A stretch of 64,000 nt of DNA from Salisapilia sapeloensis CBS 127946 (Eukaryota; Protista; Oomycota), in contig JAADVB010000018.1 of the NCBI GenBank assembly GCA_023334545.1, positions 1-64,000 of the forward strand, given 5' to 3'. The notes under the pieces were generated by a model. It searched no databases, had not been told where the DNA came from, and worked only from the letters and a program-made list of their open reading frames with translations. The position numbers were made by a program, and so were the translations under genes. This document shows positions 30,728 to 48,124 of this stretch, one piece after another (position 1 is the first letter of the stretch; every line of letters begins with the position of its first letter).

Positions 30728-33286
30728 TTAGGCACTGTGTTGAATAATATCCAACGCTTCCTTTGCATCATCGTTCTCGATGCTTGGAAGTGTGTTCTTC
30801 ATCCGTTCGACGTGCGGTCGGAAGCGCAGACCAATGTCTTTCATGCGACTTACGGCACTCGTGAACCAATTGTCACGAAAGTCGACGCCATCGCCCATAG
30901 ATCGACTCTTGTGCTCCGACATGGCAGTCGAGAAGCCAGTAAAGATCATTGTGAGAGCCTCATCCATCGCCTGTTCATCGTCGGCGTACAGCGCAAGAGC
31001 GTCGAATGCGACCTCCCAGATGTACGGCCAACTGAACTGCGGCACGACTTCCGGCGTGAATAGCCACTTGGCGACAGTCGAGAGTGTCAGGCGACGTTGA
31101 CGGAGCATCATGTTCGCAATGAGCGCAACGTGCTGAGGAGACTGTGCCCAGACTTTGGCAAGTGTCTGTAAGACGATCATCTCGTCACTAAACGTTTCAA
31201 TGCCAGACGGATAGCGCTCTAACAGGAGACGAATGTGCGTAAAGGTGGCGGCACCAGCCTCCAGCATACTCGTCCACAAGAGTTCAGTCGCAACGACGAC
31301 ACCTAATTCTTCCTTGGTATCGATTTGCTCTTGGAGGAAGGCTACGAGAACATCTGCAGGTGGATGCGTCTTGAGCTTACTACTGATCTCTTCGTATGCG
31401 GACGAGAGCGTGCTATCGTTAGCAAAGCGATTCACAGGCTGAGGAGACGGAGGGAGGAGCGTATGTAGGTCGGAAGGCAGAGCTTCTTGCATCAACTGAC
31501 GATAGGAAAGACGGACGCAACGCTCTAGCACGGACGACACGAAGACACGCTGCGGGTCATCTTGACGTGCGTCGAGGACGAACGTCCATCGCGCCCAGGC
31601 CCATTTGAATTCAAAGTTAGAAAGGAAGTGGGAGAAGAGGAGGACGAAAGAGTCGATGGTAGAGGACGACATGGACGGAAGTTCACGGAACAAGAGCTCT
31701 ACGACCGTCGCGAGAGCCGGTGATACGGCACGTGCATCGGTTTTAACCAAGTGGCGAAGGACAGAGCAATAGTAGATGAGTTCCTTGCGTGTCTTGCTCG
31801 CGAGTGCAGTAGACAGGAGTGTTTCGAGGAGAAGGAACTCGCCTTTAATGCCTTCCATACGACTGCTGATGTCCTTGGCGAGCGCAATGAGTTGCTTGGC
31901 TGCCATCGCAGGCTTCGGATCGAACGTCTGGAAGGTGTGGAGGAAGGACGAACGGAACGAAAGGTAGGATGCGAGAGGAAGAGCGTGAATGGCAGCTCCT
32001 TGGGCACCTGTTTCAGCGGTGAAGATGCGAAAGAAGAGAGGGTAGGAAGGCGTTTTCGACGGATCGAATGCTTCGAACGTGACGGCCGCGTCGATCGGGT
32101 GTTCGTTCGCATTCCGTGTAAAGGTAGAGGGGAAGATGGACACAGGATCGACTACACCAGGCGTTTCGTAGATGCTTTTGTCTGACTCTTGCTTGTGTAG
32201 CGAGGAGAAGGCGGCGTATTGAATGGACAGAAGGTCGTGTGATTGACAGAACGAGACCAAGTCTTCTTCTGGTTCGTACAGAAGATGCAGACGGACACGA
32301 CGTACGAGCCATGAGGACTCTTGTCCTTCCTCTCGGAATGAAATGAAGTCACTGCAGCGACTCACGAGACTAGTGAACATGGCGTCGTCGGCCTGTTGTA
32401 GTGCTTTCCCACCGTGTGTGAGTGCGTCGAGGACAACGGAAGCGAAAAATTCTTTCATGGGAACAATGTCATCCAGTTCGGACGTGCAAACAGACTGGAG
32501 GCTATCGAGAATGCGAAGGACGTCGCTCGCGTCAGTCACGTGGACACTTACGAGCGACGTTAAGAAGCGAACGAAGAGACGCAGTTTGAGCGCTCGTTCG
32601 TCTATTTCTTGGATCGTGTACGATCGAGAGTCATCTGGTGACTGGAAGAAGAACATCAAGAGCGTCTGGATGCGAGTACATGTCGTCTGGAGAACGTATC
32701 GTCCAAAATCAGGCTTTTGCTGATTCACTAGACCAACGAGAGACGCATATAAATGGGTCTTGTGAGCTAGACGAGTGACACCACGCAAGACAAGGTCTCC
32801 TAACGCGTTCGTCTTCACCTCCGGATCTTGCTCGAGCTCCTGGATGATGCGCTGACTGGCATTCGATAGCTCTTCTGTTAGTTCCTCTGCAGTCGAATAC
32901 GCATCACCAAGCGGTGTCTTTTCACCTAGCTCGATGATACACTTCTTGGCTAGTCTCCATTTCCTATCGCTTTCGCTTTCCGGTGGAGGCGCAGGGGGAC
33001 CCCTCGATCGGCCAGTGTAGTGCGACGGACGACGGTAGTTTCGATCACGGCCACGGTCGTCATTGTAGCGAGGCCTCTTGGCATCTCGATAATGATCCGG
33101 CGAACCGCCTCGATTCCTATACCCGTCTTGCTCATCGAAAGAGCGACGTCGACGCCTAGAGCTGTCATTCGCGTCAGCTCTCGACTCGTAGTGACTGTCA
33201 TTAGATCCGTTGTTCCTCTCGGATGTATTGTCCATGGCAGAGTAGGACGTGGAGGATGTATCGGCTGGTGGTATGTCCTCGTTCAT
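30728..33286 (-). CDS. NCBP1: Nuclear cap-binding protein subunit 1 (CBP80)
   Basis: HKTHLYASLVGLVN, FSHFLSNFEFKWAWARW, VLERCVRLSY; MIF4G-like repeats; basic low-complexity N-terminus. Confidence 0.92.
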   Translation of the reverse strand: MNEDIPPADTSSTSYSAMDNTSERNNGSNDSHYESRADANDSSRRRRRSFDEQDGYRNRGGSPDHYRDAKRPRYNDDRGRDRNYRRPSHYTGRSRGPPAPPPESESDRKWRLAKKCIIELGEKTPLGDAYSTAEELTEELSNASQRIIQELEQDPEVKTNALGDLVLRGVTRLAHKTHLYASLVGLVNQQKPDFGRYVLQTTCTRIQTLLMFFFQSPDDSRSYTIQEIDERALKLRLFVRFLTSLVSVHVTDASDVLRILDSLQSVCTSELDDIVPMKEFFASVVLDALTHGGKALQQADDAMFTSLVSRCSDFISFREEGQESSWLVRRVRLHLLYEPEEDLVSFCQSHDLLSIQYAAFSSLHKQESDKSIYETPGVVDPVSIFPSTFTRNANEHPIDAAVTFEAFDPSKTPSYPLFFRIFTAETGAQGAAIHALPLASYLSFRSSFLHTFQTFDPKPAMAAKQLIALAKDISSRMEGIKGEFLLLETLLSTALASKTRKELIYYCSVLRHLVKTDARAVSPALATVVELLFRELPSMSSSTIDSFVLLFSHFLSNFEFKWAWARWTFVLDARQDDPQRVFVSSVLERCVRLSYRQLMQEALPSDLHTLLPPSPQPVNRFANDSTLSSAYEEISSKLKTHPPADVLVAFLQEQIDTKEELGVVVATELLWTSMLEAGAATFTHIRLLLERYPSGIETFSDEMIVLQTLAKVWAQSPQHVALIANMMLRQRRLTLSTVAKWLFTPEVVPQFSWPYIWEVAFDALALYADDEQAMDEALTMIFTGFSTAMSEHKSRSMGDGVDFRDNWFTSAVSRMKDIGLRFRPHVERMKNTLPSIENDDAKEALDIIQHSA

Positions 33287-33417
33287 GATGCAGAAGGAAG
33301 CAGGAGCTGCAGGAGGCGATGTGGTCCACGATCGATCCGTTTTCTACCAATGGTGTTTGGTACGGGAGTGGTACATGCAATCTTGAAGGGATGGATGCCA
33401 ATATCTTTCCATTTAAA

Positions 33418-36400
33418 ATGATTTTCTGGTGCTGGGTGCTCTTACTGAGTGTTCTAGATGCTCGGTTCATCTATCCGACTGATGAAGAACGTGCAAATGT
33501 GATGAAGGCTGTGGAGTTATATTCTAAAGCACAGACAGCGAGTGTGAACGGAGATAGGATAGGAGCGATAGAGCTGTATCACGAATCCATTGCAGCGTAT
33601 CCGAAGATTCCTGGTGCTTATAACAACTTGGGCATACTCATGTTTGATACTAGGAATGCTTCGTTGGCAGAAGTGTATAGAGTGCTGGAAAATGGAGTTA
33701 AGGTTGCCATTGCAACGAATGACTCGGAAGAGCATGCGTGGATTATGAACAATATAGGATACGTGACGCGTGAATGGCACCGGACTAGCTTTTCCGGTTG
33801 CCAAGAAGCTATCAAGTACTTTGATAAGGCATTGGAAATCCGACCAGAATACATGGAACCAATGTACAACAAGGCGTCTGCGTTGTATGCGATGCGAGAG
33901 TATCAACTAGCACTCGAGCTCTATGAACGCGTCCTGGACTGGAGACCAGACCATGTCGGAGCCCATCTTGACATGGGCATCATCGCGTATGATCAAGGTG
34001 AATACAAAAAAGCGATCTATCACGAAGACATGGCAGTAAGATCAGCTACTACGAACGAAGAGCTGTTGTCTGCACTGAACAACAAGGGTCATTTCTTAAA
34101 AGAGAATGGCCAAGCGCTTTTGGCACTTGAAGTACATGAGCAGGCAAGAGCACTTGATAGGATGAATACACTAGCCACTGTAAACGTGGTAACGAGTCGA
34201 CGGACGTTGTGCATGTGGGAGAACATGAGCGAATTGCAGACAGAGATGTTTGAGCTTGTAGAAAAGCAACTGGAGGAAAGCGTTGATGTAGACCTATATC
34301 CATTTGATTCGACTTTACTCCCAGTCTCTGATGCATTTCGAAAGCGGTTGGCGAGTACGCATGCTCGTGCTTTTCAACAGAAACCTAGGTTTCCAGTCAT
34401 ATCTGCTGGAAAAGACCAGGGTAGGCTACGCATTGGATACTTGAGCTTTGACTTTCGAGACCATCCTATGGGTCAGCTAACATTAGGTCTACTTAAGCAT
34501 CATGATAGGCAGTATACAGACATCTACTGCTATTCGTATGGCTTGAATGACCAGTCAACGTGGAGAGTGGGTGCAGAGACACATTGCGACTATTTTCTAG
34601 ACGTTATTAAGCTATCTGACATGGAAATCGCCTCGCAGATTGAAAAAGACAGGATAGAAGTACTAGTGGACTTGATGGCGTATACTAAAGGAGCTCGAGT
34701 CGATATTGTTGCGTTAAAACCGAGTCCGATCATTGTGAATTACTTGGGGTATCCAGGTACGATGGGCAGTCTGACAACAGACTTTGCACTCGTGGATCGA
34801 TACGTCGTTCCACCAGAACGAGCGGCGTCTAGTATGACGGAGAAAGTGGTGTATCTGCCACATGTATATCAAGTGAATGACTATGAACTGTCCCATCCAG
34901 CATTGCGCATCGAATCGTCTGGTATATGGAATCGGAAGAAGCTGGGACTTCCAGAAGATGCTATTGTCTTTTGTAACTTTAACGCGCTGGATAAAATGGA
35001 GCCAATGTCATTTACGCTCTGGATGAACATACTAAAACGAGTACCTAATAGTGTGCTATGGCTGCTTGAGCCTTCCGACTTGGAGACAGGAAAAGCGACA
35101 AAAAATCGACTGCAGATGGAAGCGCTAAAGAGAGGTGTTCTTCCCGATCGGATTGTCTTTGGCGGGAGAATGAAAAAAGAAGATCACTTGCGTAGAGTGT
35201 CTTTTGCTGATATCTTTCTCGATTCGCTCATTTATAATGCACATTCCACAGCATCAGATACCTTGTGGGCTGGTGTGCCGATTGTTACGGTGTGGGGGGA
35301 TACATTCCCATCTCGTGTTGCTGGAGCGATTCTGTCGAACGTTGTGAATGAGACGTTGGTGCCTCATACACTTGAGGCATATGAGGATATGGCCGTGCAA
35401 TTAGCGAGAAACAACAAGCTTCGGGTGCAGTGGAAGAAGGAGCTGATGGCCAACAGTCTACGGTATCCGCTCTTTGACACGAAGAGAACGACAGCGTATG
35501 CTGAGCGCGCTTACGAGGCGATGCAGGATGCTAAAAGCTGTGATGGTACTAAGTTCCACGTGGTCATAAGCCCAGGAGTTTCTAGATTATTATCTACGAC
35601 GGAGAACACGGAAAGGAGATTGAGAGAAGCCATGCAAGAGGCAAACAAAATGAAAAGAAATGAGCAAATGGATCGGGCGAATACAATCTATCGACGTGTC
35701 TTGGCTACAGATATGGACACCGCATCTATCGAGGTACGCTATAAAGCTTTTATTTGATAAGAATCATTCGTTCTTAATGAAAGCCTTGTAGACTCTACGC
35801 ATAGATGCTTTCACTCATTTACTAGACTCCTTGTTCGATCGAGGTGAGCACAATGAGATTGCAGATCTATGCTCAATGTACAAAACAGACTCAATCAACT
35901 CCAAACTCCATCTTGCATTGGAGTCAAAGGAGCATTTGTTCCTCCGATGTAGCTATGCTTTTGCACAGATCAATCAAAGGGAGAGAGCTATTGATCTACT
36001 CCAAAAAGCGACTCATTTGTTTCCAATCTTCTTTCGTGCTGGATATAGCTTAGCCGCTTTGTACCATTCGCAAGGGCATTATAACCGAGGCGAGCAACAG
36101 CTTCAACAGGTTGTCAAAAGTGAACATCAGCATGTCTTTAACCGAACAAGGATGAAAATTCACGAGCGTCCACAAGGTGTTAAAGTGGTAGTGATTTATT
36201 GCAACGAGTATGGTCAATCCTGGTGGGGTGGTTGGAGACCATCCGATCTTGCAAAAGGTCTTGGGGGATCGGAAGAAGCGGTTGTATTTATCAGCAGAGA
36301 GTTGGCAAAGCTGGGCTACTGGGTCGAAGTGTATGGTAATCCAACTAAAGATAACAAAGCGAGTGTAGAGGACGAAGGTGTTATGTGGTACTCGTGGGAG

Positions 36401-37288
36401 ATGTATGACGCCAGCACCAATGTCGATATCTTTATTGCTTGGCGATACCACCACTCTATTGCACTCGGCGCGAATGCGAAGACTAAATACTTTTGGATCC
36501 ATGATGAACCGGCTGAAGAAGTTAAGCAGTCAAAGCTTCTTGCATCGAGTCAAGTGGATGGGATTCTTTGTGTAAGCAGCTTTCAAGCTTCTCAACTCCC
36601 GTCTACACTGCAACACAAGACAGTTGTCACACGCAATGGGCTAGATCCAGCCTACTTTGTCGACGGCAAGAATCGAGCGACACATTTTGTTTATGGAAGT
36701 GCTCCAGGTCGAGGGCTAGAGAGGTTATTACGAATGTGGCCTCGTATATTCAACGATCTTCCAAATGCTACCTTGTCGGTGTTCTATGGCTTCACGCCAG
36801 CCTTTCGAGCCCACGGTAGCAATACGATTCCGAATTATAAACGATGGGAGATGGAAATGACCGATATGCTTTTGACCTTGCCTGGAGTAAGCTACCGAGG
36901 TCTTGTAGATCATGAAACGCTTGCTATTGAGTATGCTGATGCAGGGTTTTACCTGTACCCGACAACGTTTAGTGAAACAAGCTGTGTGTCTCTCATGAAG
37001 GCAATGGCGAATGGTGCGATACCAATTACATCAAAGTTCGGGCAATCAGCTCTTGTTGAGACAGCAAATGGGTTTGATATAGGACCAACAGAAGCTGTGA
37101 ATTCGTCATTGGAAGCAGAGACTAGTGAGTGGATGAACAGGTACATTGATAGTGTCGTGTCTTCCGCGAAAAAAAGCTCACAGCTGCATGAATTTCGGCA
37201 AAGAATGAAACGAGAAGCTAGGGAGAACTTTTTATGGTCAGCCATTGCCAATGAATGGAAACTTTTATTCTCGTTTAGGGGTGTATGA
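33418..37288 (+). CDS. Signal peptide + TPR + GT41 (OGT/SPINDLY-like) + TPR + GT4-like GT-B domain; predicted as one 2-exon gene
   Basis: MIFWCWVLLLSVLDA leader; RLRIGYLSFDFRDHP, DLMAYTKGAR, YLGYPGT, FCNFNALDK, DTLWAGVP; intron 35734-35791 (GTACGC..TTGTAG) joins in frame to GLGGSEEA, FVYGSAPGRGL, YPTTFSETSCVSLMKAMANG. Confidence 0.8.
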
Positions 37289-37324
37289 AGCAGGAATACA
37301 ACCTTTCTTTCTACCTTGAGTGTT

Positions 37325-40300
37325 CTACACGGCTTCGACATAGTATCTTGGGTAGATTTCATCTGACCCTGAAAATAGTGCATCATTCGGAATGATTTCC
37401 TTTGGTTGTCGATCACTTTGCCATCGCAAGTAGAGGTGACCATATTCACTGCGAGTTGTTGGGCGATGATATTCTAGTGAAACAAAGTACAGCCGCTCGG
37501 TGTACAGTGTCAAGGTAGCTTCTGCGGATGTCGTACTTGGTACTTGTGGAGAATGCACAGTATCTATGACAGGTGTGCCGTCTATTGATAAGATGGCACC
37601 ACGATCGGCTTCAATAGACAAGGTGTAGTTTTCAGAGAATCGTGGTTCCATGTATCCTTCCCAATGAATTCGGGGGTAGACTCTCATCGTTAGCAGTGTC
37701 TTCCAGTCAAACGAGATTATATCATCAATTTTGTGCAGAGCAAAAGGAGCTTTGGGATCGTTTGATGCATAATAGTAACCAGTTAATCCACGGTCTTTGT
37801 GCTGACGAGCTAGGTCCACCTGTATCTCGTATGATCCGGTCTTGCTTACTTTGTACGTTACCACATACTGTCCATTATCAAGGTCAGTAATGTTACCGTA
37901 GACTACTTCTGGACCTCGAACGGTGACAATAAGGTCGTCACCACCACTTTCCAGAGGATTATTGTACGCATCCCGGAGCTGGATCTGAAAGTATTGGTCC
38001 TTGTCTATATCAACGTTGGATATAAGACCAGAGCTAGACGGAATAGCTTTGGAAGTCGTGTGTATCGCTATATTTGGCTTTACGACAATGGAAGAGGCTT
38101 TTTGCATTGGAGTGTTGTCATCAAAAGCGAGGTATAAGCCATAGACTCCAGTTAGTTGTGGCGTGTACGTCATACGATAGACACCGTTAGAAGAGGAGAT
38201 GTAAGAGAGGTCAACTTTTCTAGCGGTAGAATTCCACGCAACGTTATCGTCCACTGCAGTTATGATTTGAATCCACGCTTTCATCCAAAGGTCAATCAAA
38301 TCGATTTCCCCAACTGCATTAAAGTGAAGATCTCGTGGTACGATGTCAACATAGGCCATTTCACCTGCGGTAGCTAGTGATAGCCCACCTCCGAATACAT
38401 CTGATGTCTCTGCTGTTGGTGCATTCGGCATAATATGCAACGCAAATGGAGATTGATAGATGGTATATGGGTGCAGAAAGGTTAGAAGTGAGTCTGTTTG
38501 GACCTCATTCCCGGGAGAAATGTTGAGTGGAACTGCTGCTACCGTCATTGCATAGTTGCCCATCTTGATAGGCATAAAAGATACTTTATATGTACCATTT
38601 CCTTTGTCATCAATGGCTAGCGTTGGTTCGGATGATGATGAATCCGTCATACCTGGCACGATGACAAATATGCGTTCATCGCTTTCAAGACGCAAGTTAC
38701 TAAACTCGTCTCTAGCGTACACATCAAAGTGGAACCATTCCCCAGCAGTTCCTTGTACTTGAAAGCGACCCAATTGTTCATCCCTTTCAGGGTTTGTTTC
38801 TTTATTAAACTCGGTTGTAAAGGATGGTGGATGTGAAGGTGCAGGTAGAATTTCAAGTGGAGGAATATTGTTCACAATAGGCCATTCTGTAGCAAGGTGG
38901 GTTCCGCTGATGACTTCCCGTGCTTGCCAGTACCCTTCCCAATAAAGACGTACACTATCGAATGGGAGGGCGAGGGGCTTTGAATAGTTAATTTGGATAG
39001 GTACTAGCTCATGTGCTAACAAATAAATCTTTGAGTGAATTTCACTAGAGAGTGAATGCATCATTTTACGATACACGATGTTGTCTCGCACCCTTATACT
39101 CGCATCACCTTGGCACTCTACTGCAAACCAGTAATTCTGAGAGTACAATGGAGATACATATCCATTCCATTGGATGCTGTACACTTCCATTGCATTTGTA
39201 CCGATCGGAGGTAAGACATTGAAATCGAAATCGATGACAGAGTCCACGCGTTGTAGACTTGGATTTCCTCGTAAGTTTGGGTTAGAAAAGTAAGAAGCAT
39301 TGAGTCCGCCAAAGACCATAAGTTGTGGAGTAAAGGGAATGACCTCACTCAAGGTCGGACGGAGATTCAATAAGTAAGTACCATCTCTTTGATCAATAAT
39401 AGGGTCTTCCAGTACTTTAATAGCATCACCGAGGCGAAAAACATTGCCTCCACTCTCTAGCTCATTTCTATAAGCATCCCGAGTTGTTAATTTCATTTCT
39501 ATCGGAACACCAGCGATGAAGATCACGCTGTCAAGACTAGATGCACTTGGTGATAGCAAGTCCAGTGTGCTAGTGTATGATGTAGCAATGGATGGGTACG
39601 TGTACATTGAAAATGGAGAATCATGAATGGGTTCCCCATTCACATCGATATGTATCTCATAGACCCCTTTCAGCTCCATTGTATACACGACTGTATACGC
39701 ATTTCCACCTTCGTGCTTGGTAGAGGAAGACACGGTCTTCGCTGGGTTTATTTCTGGAAGTGGACCAAGGAATACAACATTGATATTCTCTTGTACCGAG
39801 TTCATCTTGTCGTTATTGAATGCATCTTTGATGAGAAGTGTAAAGCTAGTTTCTTGTCCAGCAACAGAGGCTTTTAATGCGTTCCCCTCTGCTACTGAAT
39901 TAGCCCCTACGGCTGGACCAGCAGTCACAAGAACCTGAAATGGACTACCAGATATTGGCAGTGGATGGTCATCGCTCCCATATGCCAGCTCAACATTCAG
40001 AAGGTTAACTCCAGTATGCTTTGCCATGTAGGAGCAAGAGTATTGTCCATTCGCTAAGTCTTGACAGCTTCCTTCTACCTCCTTTAAATTGGATTCGTGG
40101 ACTAACGTGACAAGTATGGAAGCACCTCCACTTTGCACATCATTTACGTGAAGATCTCTTGTTGTAACAAGGAAGAAGGACTGGGTGTCTGTGCGTGCTT
40201 TATAAAGACCATCACCTTTCGCTGTAGATGTCTTTGCAATTGGTCTATTATGGATAACGGTGATAGGATACGGACTTGCATCGACATGCATATCTTGCAT

Positions 40301-43164
40301 AAATATCTGCAAACTGTAGGATCCAACCTTGCGCGGCATGTAATGTAACGAGTAGGTGCCATCTCCAAAGTCCTCGACATTACCTAGGACAACCTCACCA
40401 ACAAGATCGTTGTGGATGATATATAGTGTAAATAGCGACGAAGAACCACCAGTGTATATCCGGTTTCTATGGTAGTCTCTTGATACCAGTAAGACGCTAC
40501 TTTCTTCTCCGGCAATGCGATCCGGTAGCAGACCTGCTCCAGACACCAGGCTGTTGCTCGGATTGATAGAAGCTGGAGAAACAGTCACTCTAAATGGACT
40601 TCCAAATACCTCCGATCCTCTTTCAACGTACATTTTTAAATCGTAGATTCCTGCTCTCGTCGGCAGTAGGTGAATATCCACACTCCCAACTGCGTTGTTC
40701 CAGCTTATATGTCCACTAACAGACAGGCTTCCACTACCTCCGTCACTGTGATCATCGACAATATGCATGTCGACGTACATTACTCGTGTCCGATCGGTGC
40801 GAATGTGATTCCCAAATGCATCTCTAGGAATTAATTTTACTACAAGATCTTCTCCAGCATTTACGTCTCGTATGTTTTCAACAACACTTTCACGAGCGTC
40901 TACAATCGGTATTGGGCTGATGGGAACAGAAGTCATGGGTGAATTGGCAATTGAGAGGCCATTGTATAAAGCAGTGGATGGGACGATTTCTTTTGGCCAG
41001 GTTGCGCCACTCCAATATAGATGCACATTCGCGTCATGACGGTACTCCCGGTACTCTAGCCGGACTGCGTATAGCCGTAAAGTTTCCATATATACCGCTG
41101 CGTGCTCATGCCCCGAAAAGGATTGTCCCCATCCGTCAATCAGAAGAATATCGTTCAACCAGAAGCGAATTTTGTCGTCAGCTTCGATGTAAAATGTAAC
41201 CATCTCTGTTTGCTTTGGTTCAATCCAACCACTCCAGCGCACAGCGACATTATCCATGAAGGCCGGAACGACGGAACCAGTTCCCCATGTGAAATTAACT
41301 TGATGATCAATCCGAGAGGTAACAAGCGTAGATTCTTGGAGCCACAAATCTCCATAATATTCTCCTCTTAGACCGCCTGGGAATACAGTGAAAACAGCAA
41401 GGGTATAGTTTCCAGCTTTCTGTCGAGACCAGGAACAATAATAAGTCCCGTCATTATTGTCTAGAACAGCACCAGACTCTTTGCCTCGAAACATAAATGT
41501 TTGACTTGCATAACTATCATCTGAAATCCAAGTTTCCACAAGAAGTCTTTCACCACCTTTTACCTGCATTCTTCCGTCACTAGCTACTGCCTGAACTGTA
41601 AATGTTAGTATATCCCCTGCTTGTCCACCTTTTAAAACCTCTTGACTGGTAATAAATGTTTTAGACGCATCGATTCGGTCACGATCGTTTTCGCGTACGA
41701 TTACGAGAGCTGTCTTTTGGTTTCCTAACGTCGCTCTGGTCGGTGGCTCTGGTGGATGCAGATGCAGTCGAAACTCTTCATCTTCTTCAGCAATGTGGTC
41801 GTCATGGATGGTAACAAAGAATGTCATTTCGATAACGCCACCTTCAAACACCAACGTCTTGGAGCTTGTGTAGTGCGCTGTAGCCGATACATCGTCATCC
41901 GACGTAGTCACATGCTCCAAAGAGTAGGATATCGTAACTTTACCCATACCACCACCGCTGCGTCTGACTGTTATCGGGATATGCTCAGCCGATTCATCTA
42001 TCTCGTACAATGGCGACCGAAAGGTAAAAACGCCCTCATGACCACACACGCGATGACTGATGATAGCTGGAGAGCAGTCCCATGACTCGTCACGACGCAG
42101 ACCTTGTTGACAAGTTTCTGCAGACTGGTGTAGTTCCGCTAGAGTTTCGCCATTGGAAGCAGGGAGGAGGTAGAATGTCTCGACTTCGTCAAAGATACGA
42201 GGATCTTGTCCGCCGTATGGAAACTTGAACGAAAACTCACGTATAAGTTCATCTTGTGGCAATGGCATGTCGACACCACGCGCGCCACTGCGGTAAACCG
42301 AGTTGAGCAACGGATCAGCACATTCGAGACATTGCTTGTGATCACAATGGAGGCATCGCGGGTCATATACCTTACAGGATACTACTTGTACATCGGTTAC
42401 CAAGTCGGATTGTGCTATAGATCTATATAAATGTACCACAAGATTGATCGACTGGCTCGACGTAATAGCCTTCGAAGCATTCGACACATTTCGTGGCAGT
42501 GCAGGCCTGACACAGCGGATCGAATTGACACAGTCGCTCGGAGCAGTCCTCTCCTTTCCTCGTCTTATAGCAGGAGCACTTGCCAGTCATATAATCACAA
42601 GTCCCGCCTTGTGAGCAGTCATTCGGGCATTGACCTACACAAGCCACGTTAGTACATTCCTACGTAGTTTGCTTCCATTCGCGAAGTACGTTTTGGGTAA
42701 CATAGTCCGCCAATCTTGAGGTACGAAGGTCTGCATTCGGTGCAGTCGATACCAGTGTAGCCTTCATTGCAGACACATAGTCCCAATCGTCGATCACAAT
42801 AGCCATACTCCCGTCCATGGCAATAGTACTCTTCATCTCTTATAGGGCCCACCATGCCTGGACAGTTCTCTACATACAGTCTTAGCGAAGATTACTTTCC
42901 TAGTCGACATAATCATTGCATACGCTTTGGCTGGGCCTGGAAAAAGATACGAGGAGTGTCTGGTGAAAACGGAGATCCTTCGTTCACACGCTCTTCCAAC
43001 GGTACCACTGGATCGCCAAAGTATCCTGCATTTCCACGTACATACGGTTCAAAGGATGCTTTGTCAGCATCCTGTAGCTGTGTTACGTCCGACAGGATCC
43101 GATACGCATTCGAGACACAGATAGAGATACTCCATATGATCCAATGTATCTTGTACATATCCAA
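37325..43164 (-). CDS. Very large secreted adhesin-like protein: EGF/Cys-rich repeats, Calx-beta, multiple filamin/Ig-like repeats, three PA14 domains; 4 exons
   Basis: Signal-like MYKIHWIIWSISICVSNA; CVCNEGYTGIDC and CPNDCSQGGTCD; Calx-beta LVFEGGVIEM..DDHIAEEDEEF; filamin DNNDGTYYC/DFGDGTYSL; PA14 GLRGEYY..VRWSGWIEP, GLNASYF, GLTGYYY; no C-terminal TM seen. Confidence 0.85.
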
Positions 43165-43291: not shown

Positions 43292-46200
43292 TTAACTAGA
43301 TGACTCCATCGTAGACGTACACTCGGAACAGAACCAGTCACCTTCCGGCACTTCCTTCAACCCGACGCATTCCTACACAAGTGCTCAGTTCATAGATATA
43401 ACAAGACAAGTAGAGGAACATACGAGGTGGAAGACACGTTCACATCCTTTCTGACCGTCTTCAGATCCACAAATGACATGCGAGTCGAGACGAATGCGAT
43501 TCTGTTTGCAGATACCACACTCTTGCTTGATACATTCATTGCAGAACCATTCATCTGATGGTACCTCCTACCCATCGTTATTAAATATCATCAAGATAGA
43601 CGCATCTACATCTGAAAACGTACCTGTACATCAATGCAAGAGGTATGGAAAGCTCGAGGGCATCCATCACAGCACAGCAAGTCTCCACCGACACGACAGA
43701 CGCAGCAGCTCGTGTCCCATAGATCCTGTCCATTTGTCTTCTCACTCTTCTTCGGCGTCTCTTCCTCCGACGCATCACTAATCGTCTCATCCGATGCATC
43801 CGACGCCTCCGACTCACTCTTACTCGCCTTCCGCAATCGGCGTCTCGTATTCGGCTGCACAGGCGGCACCGGCTCATTCGAATTGTCACACTTGTGGCAA
43901 TAGATCTTCCCTCTCGGTACACGTCTAAGGCCGATGCAAGGGTAGTGGAAGACACGTGGACATCCGTCGCAGCATAGCACCTCTCCGCCTTCTTTGCAGA
44001 CATAACAGTCCTCTTCCCAATCCTCCGCCTTGTCCCTCTTGTCCGAAGATTCTTTCTTCACTTGCGTCGCCCGTCTCGTCGCTCTCTTCTCTCGTTCCTT
44101 GCTCTCCTTCTTCGGCTCTTCCACCTCGACCACTTCCTTCGGTGTCTCTGTGATGCCACAGATCTCTAGACGCTGATGGAGCGACGCAAGCGCGACGGCG
44201 AGGCTACTGACTCGATCTGCGTCTCGGACAGCACGTAGCCATCGACGTCGACAGCTCCAAGTCGGCCACAAGACCAAGTCTCCCTTACTCTTCTCTTCCT
44301 CTTCCTCCTCGTCATCACTGTCAAGACACTTTTCACTTTCCAAAGCAGCACTCATCTTCTCCTGTTGCCTCGTGCCGTTCGATATACGTACGTCAACCAC
44401 AGCTTTCTCCAGGTCTAAGACCGGTTGGATCAAGTCGGACACTTGTTGTGCAGATTGGACTCGGGATACCCAGTCCTTGTGTGTCTCTTGCCAATTCGAT
44501 CCGAGCTCCTCGAGTTTCCGACCAAGCCAATCTTCCATCTCAACAAGATCTTGACTAAAAGCATGAACATCTAACGTATCATGAGGTGCCTTCCTCCACA
44601 CTTTTTCCTTATTCCGCCAGTCCGTAAAGACTTGATCTTTCTGACGCGATCGAGACGTGTCGTCTGAAGTCATGGCATCCAAGAGGTCATCTACATACTC
44701 TTCCAACGCTGTTTTCAAAGCACTTTCTTTCGAATGTTGTGGATCGAGAGATGAAAGGAGCTCTTCGACTTGTTCTTTTTCGTGATATTGGAGCCACCGA
44801 GATGGACGATAGGATTGTCCATGGTCATATAAGCGCTGGAGTTGATGCGCAGACCCTGGGATCTCGACATGGAGACGACTTGCGTCGCCTCGGAAGAGCC
44901 AGTACTTGCGCCCTTGGCGATCTTTTCCGAGAGGTTCGGAACGGACAAAGTACGTTTCCTGTGCTTGCTTTAGTTCAAGACGTTTATCTGCTTCTTCTTG
45001 CTGTCGACGAGCATCAGCTTCCATGACCTCCGCGACATGTCGAGCGGATAGAACGAGCTTTTCATTCACACCGTACTCTGCTGCTGTATCCACACATTTA
45101 CGCAAATGGGAAGCATCTTTACACGTGATCGCAGCTTCGAGAGCTTCCTTTGCCTGTGCTTTCTTCTTCTCTAGTTGCTCTTGACGTACTTGTTCACGTT
45201 CTTTCTTATCTAATTGTGCTCGCAGACGATGACGTCGTTGATCAAGCTTCTTCTTACGCGAAAGATACTCGTGTCGACTGATTTCATCCTTCTCCTGCTC
45301 GCGCTCGAGTTCCGTATCCTGTCGATCGAGCTCTGCTAACGTCTCCGAAGTGTCTTCGTCCTCCTTTTTACTATCCGATTGTAACCAGCCTTTGACAGAG
45401 CTCTGTTGGTCTTCTAAAGCAGCTCGCTCCTCCATCTGCTGCGTACGCAACGCTTTCTCCTCTTCCTTGGTGTTCGTCCGCTCTTGGACGATCCAACGAT
45501 TAAAGTCTTTCGTCGCTTGAATCGCTTCTGTCGAATGGACGTTCACGAGACGACGCATACGTGCGGTGGCAAAGAGTTTCGAGATGAGGAAGGAGAGAAA
45601 GGAGAGCTTATGTGGAAGCGCGAGACGAGGATACTCTTGTGTCTCCAGCGCCTTTGCAGCAGACGTGAGCGCTGGACCAGCGTCACGTAGATGACGAGGG
45701 ACAGACGCGATGAGGCTGGAGAGGACGGAAGGCCATGACAAGGTGTTGAGCATGTTGGAAGTAGGCACGCCGACGGTGAGAGGCGCTTGTCGGATCTCGT
45801 ATCTGTATCTTTCCATCTCATCTAATCCACCTTCATCATCGGAAGCATAGTCCTCTTCTTCCCTATCGGCGAGAATGAGGTCGAGGAGACACATGTGGAC
45901 TTCTGTGACGAGAGGAGAGTACTCTTGGTGCATCAACGCCTGTGCGAATTGATCTAACGAGACGGGAGATAGTTCTAACAAGTCACGAAATGAAAAGATG
46001 CAGTCCCAGGCTGCGAGGAGTTCGCCAATATGTTCCTTCGGGACCTTCGCAATGTCCGTTTCGATCGCATTAGGTTTCGTCGCAGCATCCGGATTGTCTT
46101 CATCCACACCTTGTTGCTTTCGTTTCTTACTTAGTGCTTCCTCCTTTTTCTTAAGCGAAGCATCTTCCTTCTCTAGCTTTTCCAACTTTTCCTTAGCGCT

Positions 46201-46830
46201 CTTGACCGTCTGTGCCAAGTCTTCGGCGATTTTGCCCAATTTTTCTTCCTCCTGATCTTTATACTTGACCTTGCGCTTGCTTAGTATCCGGTCTTGCATG
46301 TCCAAAACACGCTTCGCCTTTTGTTCAATCGCTTCGACGGATTTCTGAGCTAAACGTTCCTCCTTTTGCTGCTGAATCTTCTGCCGCTTCGCCTTGCGTT
46401 CAAGCTGCTCCGTCTCGCGCAAGATCCGAGCTCGTTCCTTTCGATCTCGTTTCGCAGCTCGACGGTCAAGACACTCGGCACACATTCGGCAATACCATTC
46501 GGCGTTCGGTAGATCGTCTTCGGTCAAGTGCAGACAAGCCATGTGGAAGGACCGTGGACATCGGTCACAGCATAAGAGTTCACCTCCGTCTTTACAAATA
46601 TTACAATAAAGTCGATTGTTATCTCCATACCCACCACGTTTAAATCGAGTAACTTTCGTCTTTCGATTCGTCGCCTGGTGGTCCGACTCGACGGACATGT
46701 CTTCAGCTGAATTGTCAGCGCTTTCATCGTTGCATAATTCAACGATACTGAGCATACGTGAAGGTGTGTCGGCGCTATTCGAGTCACCGTTCGAGCTCTT
46801 GGGCGGCGTCGAACTGCCCTCGTCGTTCAT
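43292..46830 (-). CDS. DDT/WHIM-domain chromatin factor (BAZ/ACF1-like ISWI partner) with four PHD fingers, 3 exons
   Basis: PHD1 YCNICKDGGELLCCDRCPRSFH; DDT LLAAWDCIFSFRDLL; WHIM LPHKLSFL; WSD EPLGKDRQGRKYW; PHD2 and PHD3; a hand-spliced PHD4 ([29 protein letters not shown]) ends at TAA 43292-43294. Confidence 0.85.
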
Positions 46831-48124
46831 CGCGACCGCTCGTTTCGTTTTTCTTTGGACGACACGAGTGGGGAAGCTACGTCGTCGCGAGGTCGGTGGC
46901 GAATGTAAATTTAGCCATTGATTCGACCAGCTGGAGGCCACGAGCGATATAGTGGGCGGCAAAGTAGAGTAGAATTAGCCACGGAGATGTGAGATTGGAT
47001 AGAGGCTTGGATCATTCTTTTTAGAGGTGTCTGGAGGAGGTGGAATTTTGTATTGAGAGTGCGTATTGGTTGTTGATTTAGTTGCTTTGGTTGCTTGGAT
47101 GATAGATGGATGGATGCATTGGATGTAGTGATAGGAAGAGAGTGTTTGATGTGTGCCTGGGTGTGAGTTGTGATGCTATGTATATCTGACGGAGCATTAA
47201 AGCATTTACTTCCTAGTGCTGGAGATACATGCTCACAGTCTTTGCTTGTAACATTGCTCTACGCAGACGCATGGTCCGACACACTTGAGATGGAATAGTT
47301 GCATAATGTCACGGTCTATGGTGCTAGGTTACCAAATGAAGTGTCTGTCATATTCTTCTCCCCTTTGTGGTAATTTGCTAGTGATGAACATGAGAGATCT
47401 CTTATACTAACGAGTGTGAGGAATTGCTACGTTTTTAACGAAGAACGGGTTACCAGCTAGCAATAGTGTCAATGAAAGCCCAATTGAACGTACCCTACGA
47501 ACTATGAAGTGTAGCAGCCTATTCCTTAAACTCAAATGAGAAGACAAGCGAGTGTAAAGTGTCTACATCATCTTAAGCTCAAGATTTGATATCTTGCAGA
47601 TCTAAGCTTGGATCATACACTTATTCATGGAGACGATCTTGGTCTTTGGAAGATGTGCAACCATCATACACCCAGCTACGACTTGTAGTACTATTAAATA
47701 AACGTATTCCGATGAAAACACTGCTTATCCTTGGTCTAGCACTATAATGTTGTCTTTCGTGTCGAATGGTAGCATAAAGATGTATTTATAAGTAGACATC
47801 AAACCTACCAGTAAGGCATATTGTTGAGTACACTTACCAACGAAGCATTGCACAGATGCACGACCATAGATCTGATAGATGCATAGTAAATAACCATCGT
47901 CTGCTACCCTTCAAGCATTACTACGATTTAAAGTCGAAATGTTGATGCAACTGAAACATGTTAAAGAGAGTAAGTCGGTAATAAAGACAATGTAGTTTAA
48001 TCAGATGTAGGAACACAGAGCAAAACGTAAATGGAGCAATATACTACATGCACCAAAGAGCTACATTGACAGTCAAATCTGTCTATTTCTGGCCCAGGAG
48101 CCTAATTAGATATGCTCCTTAACA

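Follow-up and report, generated by a model that had tools for sequence, protein, structure and literature searches.

A GT41 and GT4-like fusion gene of the oomycete Salisapilia sapeloensis whose product is predicted to enter the secretory pathway

To our knowledge, the glycosyltransferase family 41 (GT41) enzymes OGT, SEC and SPY are the textbook case of glycosylation outside the secretory pathway. Whether a GT41 enzyme can also work inside that pathway is the question raised by a gene of the oomycete Salisapilia sapeloensis, whose genome is of the compact eukaryotic type. The gene lies on the plus strand of a 64,000-nt stretch, positions 1–64,000 of contig JAADVB010000018.1, which is called the window here. 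Its product joins a GT41 module and a GT4-like module behind a putative signal peptide. The gene appears to belong, as the orthologue from a peronosporomycete oomycete on a long branch, to a conserved family of stramenopile two-module enzymes that are predicted to enter the secretory pathway. That the product is a lumenal protein glycosyltransferase, whose GT4-like module acts after or along with the GT41 module, is in our judgment probable, if only just.

The coding sequence is divided between two open reading frames (ORFs), ORF1 at 33319–35757 (+) and ORF2 at 35831–37288 (+), whose frames differ by one. A first-pass annotation of the sequence had proposed that a 58-nt intron joins them in frame into one protein of about 1270 residues, a proposal against which two separate transcripts would have told. 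The intron begins with GT at 35734–35735 and ends with AG at 35790–35791. The last nucleotide of exon 1, 35733, completes a codon, and exon 2 (35792–37288) reads on in frame to a TGA stop. With translation from the ATG at 33418, exon 1 contributes 772 residues and exon 2 another 498, giving 1270. Contigs of four public runs, which come from one study and at most three samples, were compared over 33200–37400. In each run a single contig, starting at 33395, 33432, 33438 or 33443 and ending within 37313–37325, covers both ORFs and lacks exactly the 58 nt between GT and AG. The divergent upstream neighbour is represented by separate contigs, two to four times deeper, that end at 33329–33337. Since the contigs end at gene borders and the intron is absent from them, they are transcript assemblies; since one contig runs over both ORFs without the 58 nt, the intron is real and both ORFs lie on one mRNA. 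The locus is one gene with one spliced mRNA; the proposed intron and the single transcript are borne out in four of four runs, and the length read from 33418 equals the one proposed.

The start codon can be placed by means of the same contigs. A start at the ATG at 33319 was rejected, because this position lies inside the transcript contigs of the neighbour and upstream of every contig of the GT41–GT4 gene. The ATG at 33391 is four bases outside the longest contig, and the ATG at 33418 is the first within contig coverage, being included in only one of the four contigs. The contig starts downstream of 33418 are probably due to 5′ truncation of the assemblies. An upstream ORF of eight codons, out of frame, begins with the ATG at 33395 and ends with a TGA at 33419–33421 that overlaps the ATG at 33418 (aaaATGa). 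The start codons of the gene and of the divergent CBP80-like gene are separated by 131 nt (33287–33417), and the transcript contigs of the two genes are less than 60 nt apart, an extremely short bidirectional promoter.

Database searches and structure predictions were made per exon. Exon 1 matches the Pfam family Glyco_transf_41 (PF13844) with 309.7 bits (cut-off 25, E 3.9e-92) and also matches families of tetratricopeptide repeats (TPRs); against NCBIfam there were only generic TPR and GlgA-tail matches, far under the cut-offs. Human OGT (hOGT) is matched with E 1e-102 at about 32% identity. The AlphaFold model of exon 1, with a mean predicted local distance difference test (pLDDT) score of 89.9, begins with an N-terminal helix of low confidence, after which come 13 TPR helices (about 6.5 repeats), a transitional helix and the GT-B domain. 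It superimposes on XcOGT of Xanthomonas campestris with Z 40 (root-mean-square deviation, rmsd, about 3 Å over about 535 residues), on human and fly OGT with Z 35–36 (rmsd about 2.8 Å, about 600 residues), on SPY with Z 33 and on NGT/HMW1C with Z 25. The intervening domain of human OGT, residues 716–830, is reduced to about 6 residues and the model holds no extra domain, in agreement with the compact catalytic region without a long insertion that the first-pass annotation had described. The GT41 motifs listed there are real as well: FRDHP holds the equivalent of hOGT H558, NFNALDK that of hOGT K842, and YTKGAR and LGYPGT align to the same strings of the human enzyme.

The residues H349, K526, L550, K587, H590, R593, Y606, H609-S610-T611 and D614 of the window protein correspond to hOGT H558, K842, L866, K898, H901, R904, C917, H920–T922 and D925, respectively. 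Among 49 relatives, H349, K526, K587, H590, R593, H609, T611 and D614 are invariant or nearly so. The asparagine ladder of OGT is kept at five of the six aligned sites (equivalents of hOGT N298, N332, N366, N434 and N468), which fits a predicted binding of extended peptides. With the profile match, a TPR and GT-B layout superimposable on solved GT41 structures, and the complete set of K842, H558 and UDP-binding (uridine diphosphate) equivalents, exon 1 is a member of GT41. It stands outside the OGT/SEC clan of O-GlcNAc transferases because its donor signature, Leu/Arg/Tyr, is a mixed one.

Donor specificity in GT41 is set by L866/R904/C917 in hOGT versus K689/A731/Y744 in SPY, and a Tyr at the C917 position clashes with the N-acetyl group of GlcNAc (Kumar 2023, PMC10027727). 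The same study describes an "intermediate" GT41 clan of prokaryotic and stramenopile TPR glycosyltransferases with mixed donor signatures. The window protein and all its oomycete relatives have Leu/Arg/Tyr (L550, R593, Y606), and the Tyr is invariant in the oomycete clade. L550 and R593 agree with the OGT/SEC signature and Y606 does not; at the positions of the guanine-binding Lys (K689) and the Ala (A731) of SPY stand Leu and Arg. The nucleotide site looks to be of the uridine type, with a UDP-sugar as the likely donor. UDP-GlcNAc is a doubtful candidate because the C917 position is occupied by Tyr, as it is in SPY. In databases the orthologues bear the rule-based name "protein O-GlcNAc transferase". 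An O-GlcNAc label is weakened by the invariant Tyr together with the replacement of Q839, Y841 and H498 (Kumar 2023, PMC10027727), and the mixed signature suggests a GT41 activity of a kind yet to be described.

For exon 2, Pfam returned weak GT4/Glyco_trans_1_4 matches (about 19 bits versus cut-offs of 27–28.5, E about 1e-3) and TPR_19, and a sequence search of the PDB returned TPR matches only. Orthologues of the window protein carry precomputed PF13692 and PF00534 matches. The model of exon 2, built with 48 homologues, has a pLDDT of 94.4 and comprises TPR-like helices followed by a GT-B domain. This domain superimposes on the retaining GT4 enzymes GlgM, MshA, ManT, sucrose-phosphate synthase (SPS), PimA and BshA with Z 27–29.4 and rmsd of 2.6–3.2 Å (about 2.9) over 310–329 aligned residues, so that the predicted fold upholds the second GT4-like GT-B domain that had been placed after more TPRs. 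The strongly conserved motifs of module 2 are GLGGSEEAVV (156–165), W217-R218, D238, R307-G308 and E395. Module 2 has a GT4-like GT-B fold and, by analogy with the matched enzymes, may be retaining. An assignment of exon 2 to GT41 was rejected; its Foldseek whole-model matches to OGT and SPY have rmsd of 11–13 Å and reflect the TPR and GT-B layout only.

Module 2 has relatives of two other kinds. P0146, a protein of 850 residues from another eukaryote in an ENA metagenome, has a signal-peptide-like N-terminus, TPRs and a GT4-like domain, lacks GT41 and shares 37% identity with exon 2, which means that module 2 is also found by itself behind a leader. The closest relatives found outside stramenopiles are in capsid-gene clusters of phages. 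In two phage contigs (L003:4601–8346 and L004:3925–8490) an SU10-type major capsid gene is followed, one to three genes later, by a gene for a GT2-TPR-GT4-like protein; both contigs also hold a terminase and, downstream, further glycosyltransferases, methyltransferases and a sugar epimerase. The GT-B part of the proteins in these two contigs has 34% identity with module 2. Similar genes are present in annotated Caudoviricetes records, and across the phage GT2-TPR-GT4-like proteins the identity is 32–34% along the entire GT-B domain, family motifs included. Judged from gene position only, the two clusters are candidate cassettes for virion-protein glycosylation. Together with P0146 and with the module's own TPR-like arm, the phage relatives would fit a protein-directed module 2.

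The predicted compartment follows from the N-terminal leader. Read from the ATG at 33418, the leader of the window protein is MIFWCWVLLLSVLDA, with a putative cleavage site before RF (D-A/R, the slash marking cleavage) and an h-region of 13 residues whose mean Kyte-Doolittle hydropathy is 2.5. About 20 orthologues and paralogues have signal-peptide-like N-termini with a positive n-region, an h-region of 9–20 residues and a Pro/Ala c-region (NPLEA/A, HPLQA/A and PPIQA/G, for example), full leaders being exemplified by MSSQRVLLGLVVCLWSFFNPLEA/A and MFSLLVCIALLCSLSSFHHPLQA/A. The leader is kept from Saprolegnia and Aphanomyces to Phytophthora and Pythium. In the orthologues basic residues precede the h-region and acidic or neutral residues follow it, and the motif (F/Y)(I/V)YP(T/S)TPEN comes directly thereafter. 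An in-frame Met upstream of the annotated start gives back the leader MTPVHVFLAVFLCFLRCCSS in Phytophthora capsici, and the orthologues without a leader are mis-called starts or fused gene models. In well-modelled orthologues no other 19-residue segment is hydrophobic enough to resemble a membrane span, and no conserved internal Met able to yield a leaderless isoform was seen.

By the positive-inside rule, this distribution of charges would place the C-terminal bulk in the lumen, with the leader either cleaved or kept as a type II anchor, and a lumenal topology of the GT41–GT4 protein is well predicted. The window protein has seven N-x-S/T sequons. A nucleocytoplasmic location without a targeting signal, the trait of the OGT/SEC clan, does not describe this family, which has a conserved hydrophobic leader and whose location is itself a prediction. 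Of the signal-peptide-like leader proposed earlier, the hydrophobic stretch stands, conserved as it is in about 20 relatives; the usual basic n-region is absent from the window's own copy if translation starts at 33418.

The two-module arrangement is conserved. The best relatives of exon 1 are proteins of 1280–1344 residues from Lagenidium, Pythium, Phytophthora, Nothophytophthora, Aphanomyces and Saprolegnia, with 40–48% identity. Both exons are colinear in seven orthologues, and in P. capsici both domains are in one uninterrupted ORF (L001:1571–5620). A pelagophyte protein, P0138, also has GT41 and the second domain, and brown-algal fragments match as well; no animal or plant sequence turned up among the close relatives. 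Other oomycete assemblies also encode leader-bearing paralogues that have GT41 only (P0016, P0018). In a quick tree the window sequence falls within the Pythium/Phytophthora/Lagenidium clade (Shimodaira–Hasegawa-like approximate likelihood-ratio test, SH-aLRT, 98) on a long branch. The linker between the modules is about 55–70 residues shorter in the window protein than in the Phytophthora and Saprolegnia orthologues. Public models of the orthologues are often wrong (L001:1571–1800; P0011, P0001, P0017, P0012, P0014, P0015, P0019). Starts are called past the signal peptide in the P. capsici and Lagenidium models, the P. cactorum model P0017 is fused to the upstream FSH1 gene, and several models part from one another in their 3′ ends beyond the FDLGP motif, for which a missed intron is the probable reason.

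In the window the gene order is a CBP80-like MIF4G gene at 30728–33286 (−), the GT41–GT4 gene, a giant gene, and a DDT/WSD/PHD gene at 43606–46962 (−). The gene next after the orthologue in P. capsici and Saprolegnia parasitica is DDT/PHD, and the MIF4G (CBP80-like) gene of P. capsici is nearby, beyond DDT/PHD, versus directly upstream in the window. This synteny agrees with the placement of the window gene in the tree. The giant gene, at 37325–42487 (−), is an ORF of 1720 residues for a GEX2-like giant surface protein, whose domains are Ig_GEX2_N, six filamin repeats, three PA14, Calx-beta and Invasin_D3. P. capsici and Saprolegnia have no such gene at the syntenic place.

A mechanism can be proposed from these parts. 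From the N-terminus onward, a signal peptide would be followed by about 6.5 OGT-type TPRs, an inverting GT41 domain, about 4–5 TPR-like repeats and a GT4-like GT-B domain, the last retaining by analogy. The leader would take the protein into the endoplasmic reticulum (ER), with its bulk on the lumenal side whether the leader is cleaved or not. There the TPR superhelix and its asparagine ladder may hold extended Ser/Thr stretches of secretory or cell-surface proteins at the GT41 site, which would use a UDP-sugar as donor. Since Tyr stands at the position of hOGT C917, the sugar transferred is probably not GlcNAc but a hexose or some other one without an N-acetyl group. Module 2 would add a second, alpha-linked sugar to the GT41 product, or would glycosylate the same clients at other sites. 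What the data show directly is the gene model with its single spliced transcript, the identity of the domains, the nucleotide-binding residues that are kept, and a leader and a fusion that are conserved. That the protein resides in the lumen, that both modules are catalytic, that their acceptors are proteins, which sugars they use and in which order they act is what we infer. An initiator-plus-extender pair that builds a disaccharide, as the first-pass annotation suggested, is one form that this may take; module 2 could equally be a second, independent protein glycosyltransferase, since it has its own TPR-like arm and occurs alone in P0146. More specifically, stramenopiles might possess an O-glycosylation of the ER/Golgi lumen in which the GT41 module adds a beta-linked, non-GlcNAc sugar of a UDP donor to Ser/Thr of secretory proteins and the GT4-like module an alpha-linked second sugar, through a synthase that was possibly acquired horizontally; we offer this tentatively, as possible and still rather doubtful.

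Several observations weigh against a lumenal two-module glycosyltransferase. The h-region of the window's own leader is short and no basic n-region precedes it if 33418 is the start; three of the four contigs begin at 33432–33443, 14–25 nt past that ATG; and the next in-frame ATG, at 33502, could give a shorter, leaderless isoform. No K/HDEL or other retention signal that would keep the protein in the ER or Golgi is present (the window protein ends in ...LLFSFRGV, and no orthologue ends in K/HDEL). The residues at hOGT H498, D554, Q839 and Y841 are replaced throughout the clade. In module 2 the Pfam scores for GT4 fall under the cut-offs, and the second Glu of the EX7E motif is K403 (consensus ETSCxxxMKAMA) in the whole subfamily, with E395 nearly invariant. 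The late contig starts, with the eight-codon upstream ORF that overlaps the ATG at 33418, would suit a nucleocytoplasmic OGT/SEC-like enzyme whose hydrophobic N-terminus is an artefact of annotation or is bypassed by the start at 33502, and characterised GT41 enzymes are generally known to be cytosolic or nuclear (so also PMC6278486). Yet the ATG at 33418 is covered by one contig, a conserved internal Met is lacking after the leader, and the leader is found in about 20 sequences of both major oomycete lineages, directly before a conserved mature N-terminus; a leader without function would not persist at 40% overall identity. Such a cytosolic enzyme is in our view improbable. The absent retention signal, the replaced active-site residues and the degenerate EX7E motif would instead accord with a secreted protein of glycosyltransferase descent that has no catalytic activity and serves as a TPR scaffold or binds carbohydrate. 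We give this very little credence, as the residues that bind nucleotide and phosphate do not vary in either module, deep as the divergence is, and the residues replaced here are replaced in bacterial relatives too.

Of greater weight, although still unlikely, is the possibility that both modules are lumenal and do not act in sequence on proteins. They would then be independent of each other or would use a non-protein acceptor such as a cell-wall glucan, a glycolipid or an oligosaccharide primer, with the TPRs serving complex assembly. Module 2 has its own TPR-like arm and is found without GT41, both in P0146 and in the phage GT2-TPR-GT4-like proteins; P0016 and P0018 are leader-bearing and GT41-only; small molecules, lipids or glucans are the substrates of those GT4 enzymes whose fold is nearest; and brown-algal GT41s have been considered for polysaccharide synthesis (PMC11468063). 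On the other side, the asparagine ladder of OGT is largely kept, characterised GT41 enzymes, as is generally known, all modify proteins, and retention of the fusion over the whole oomycete radiation suggests functional coupling. The convergent arrangement of the GT41–GT4 gene and the giant filamin/PA14/Calx-beta (GEX2-like) gene, only about 37 nt apart, might also recall the HMW1C–HMW1 adhesin pair, with the enzyme as a transferase dedicated to its giant neighbour. As a conserved unit this pairing was rejected, for P. capsici and Saprolegnia have no giant gene in between: the DDT/PHD gene follows the orthologue directly in P. capsici and Saprolegnia parasitica and lies beyond the giant gene in the window. 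Because the orthologues adjoin DDT/PHD directly, the adjacency to the giant gene is lineage-specific and the enzyme is ancient, and a dedicated transferase is hardly to be expected.

A lumenal two-module glycosyltransferase would differ from each of the known systems that it resembles. Human and Drosophila OGT and plant SEC share with the window protein a TPR superhelix contiguous with the GT41 GT-B domain, L866 and most of the ladder. The window protein differs from them in its predicted signal peptide, in the absence of an intervening domain, in about 6.5 TPRs versus 13.5, in the additional TPR and GT4-like module, and in a predicted lumenal versus a nucleocytoplasmic location; in its clade C917 is replaced by Tyr, H498 by Phe or Tyr, Q839 by Ala or Thr, and Y841 by Asp or Asn. 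Bacterial TPR-GT41s of the XcOGT type are cytoplasmic, single-module enzymes whose physiological substrate is not known. XcOGT and these relatives, of the intermediate clan (Kumar 2023), are the best structural match, with a compact catalytic domain that lacks the intervening domain, and many of the bacterial enzymes share the Tyr of PYNAHTT with the window protein. SPINDLY of Arabidopsis and Toxoplasma likewise has no intervening domain and has a Tyr at the sugar-recognition position (SPY Y744), but it uses GDP-fucose (guanosine diphosphate) through K689/A731 and is nucleocytosolic, whereas the window protein has the uridine-type Leu/Arg pair; the similarity of exon 1 to SPY is also much weaker (1.5e-43 versus 1e-102 for human OGT).

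The HMW1C/NGT enzymes, N-glucosyltransferases of Pasteurellaceae, share the GT41 fold (Z 25). They lack TPRs, are cytoplasmic, act before export and are 12% identical to the window protein. According to PMC3012730, they use a UDP-hexose donor and modify secreted adhesins, and a second hexose can be added. EOGT (GT61) and TMTC1–4 offer an analogy of function only, namely lumenal O-glycosylation of secretory proteins; their folds and families are unrelated, and a Pfam search of the window protein gave no matches to EOGT or TMTC families. In the ER O-mannosyltransferases TMTC1–4, lumenal TPR domains serve the O-glycosylation of secretory proteins (PMC7001481). FlmG, as described in PMC7591256, has a TPR substrate-binding arm and a glycosyltransferase domain and modifies a structural protein. 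Module 2 has the same layout; the FlmG-type and phage enzymes are cytoplasmic in bacteria.

Features of the GT41–GT4 gene in the window, with the evidence for each
Feature	Position	Strand	Evidence
Shared promoter and 5′ untranslated region (UTR), very short	33338..33417	+	Neighbour contigs end 33329–33337; longest own contig starts 33395
Start codon and predicted signal peptide MIFWCWVLLLSVLDA	33418..33462	+	Sequence and orthologue leaders; cleavage site putative
About 6.5 TPRs, 13 helices, residues 22–263 from Met 33418	33481..34206	+	Predicted structure, Pfam TPR families, human OGT alignment
GT41 catalytic GT-B domain, residues about 270–717, without intervening domain	34225..35568	+	Pfam PF13844, human OGT match, structure comparison
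C-terminal helices of exon 1 (721–764), beginning of the inter-module TPR-like linker	35578..35733	+	Predicted structure
58-nt GT..AG intron	35734..35791	+	Spliced out in four of four runs
TPR-like helical arm of module 2, exon-2 residues 1–119	35792..36148	+	Predicted structure (pLDDT 94), TPR_19 (E 0.0017), consensus-TPR matches
GT4-like GT-B domain, exon-2 residues 129–498	36176..37285	+	Structure comparison, family alignment, matches to GT4-type clusters
Stop codon (37286–37288) and 3′ UTR of about 25–37 nt, abutting the stop of the convergent neighbour (37325)	37286..37325	+	Transcript contigs

Predicted secreted GT41 proteins are not wholly new, because they were already counted in a table of oomycete secretomes. 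There, three GT41s were listed for Saprolegnia, two for Achlya and one for each of two Phytophthora species, without comment (Misner 2015, PMC4316629). Brown-algal genomes have about ten GT41 genes each, with UDP-type donor sites and with groups that "could indicate new activities" (Mazeas 2024, PMC11468063). In the searchable literature no paper was found that characterises a secretory or lumenal GT41 or a GT41–GT4 fusion, as the first-pass annotation had supposed for the lumenal route, and a literature search found no paper that mentions SPRG_05035. What appears new is a GT41 protein with a new predicted compartment, a donor signature unlike that of OGT and a new domain partner.

A lumenal topology of GT41 would surprise glycobiologists; apart from the gene model and the identities of the domains, what is said here is prediction. 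If true, GT41 chemistry would take place in the ER/Golgi lumen of a large group of eukaryotes, among them major pathogens of plants and animals as well as brown algae, and there would be a new type of eukaryotic secretory O-glycan made by a modular synthase. The link of module 2 to glycosyltransferases encoded next to phage capsid genes is a starting point for work on how virions are glycosylated and on where the eukaryotic module came from. As no animals or plants are among the close relatives seen, the enzyme may, speculatively, serve as a selective target. Little is known of how the secreted and cell-surface proteins of oomycetes are O-glycosylated, and for this the GT41–GT4 protein is a concrete candidate that can be tested.

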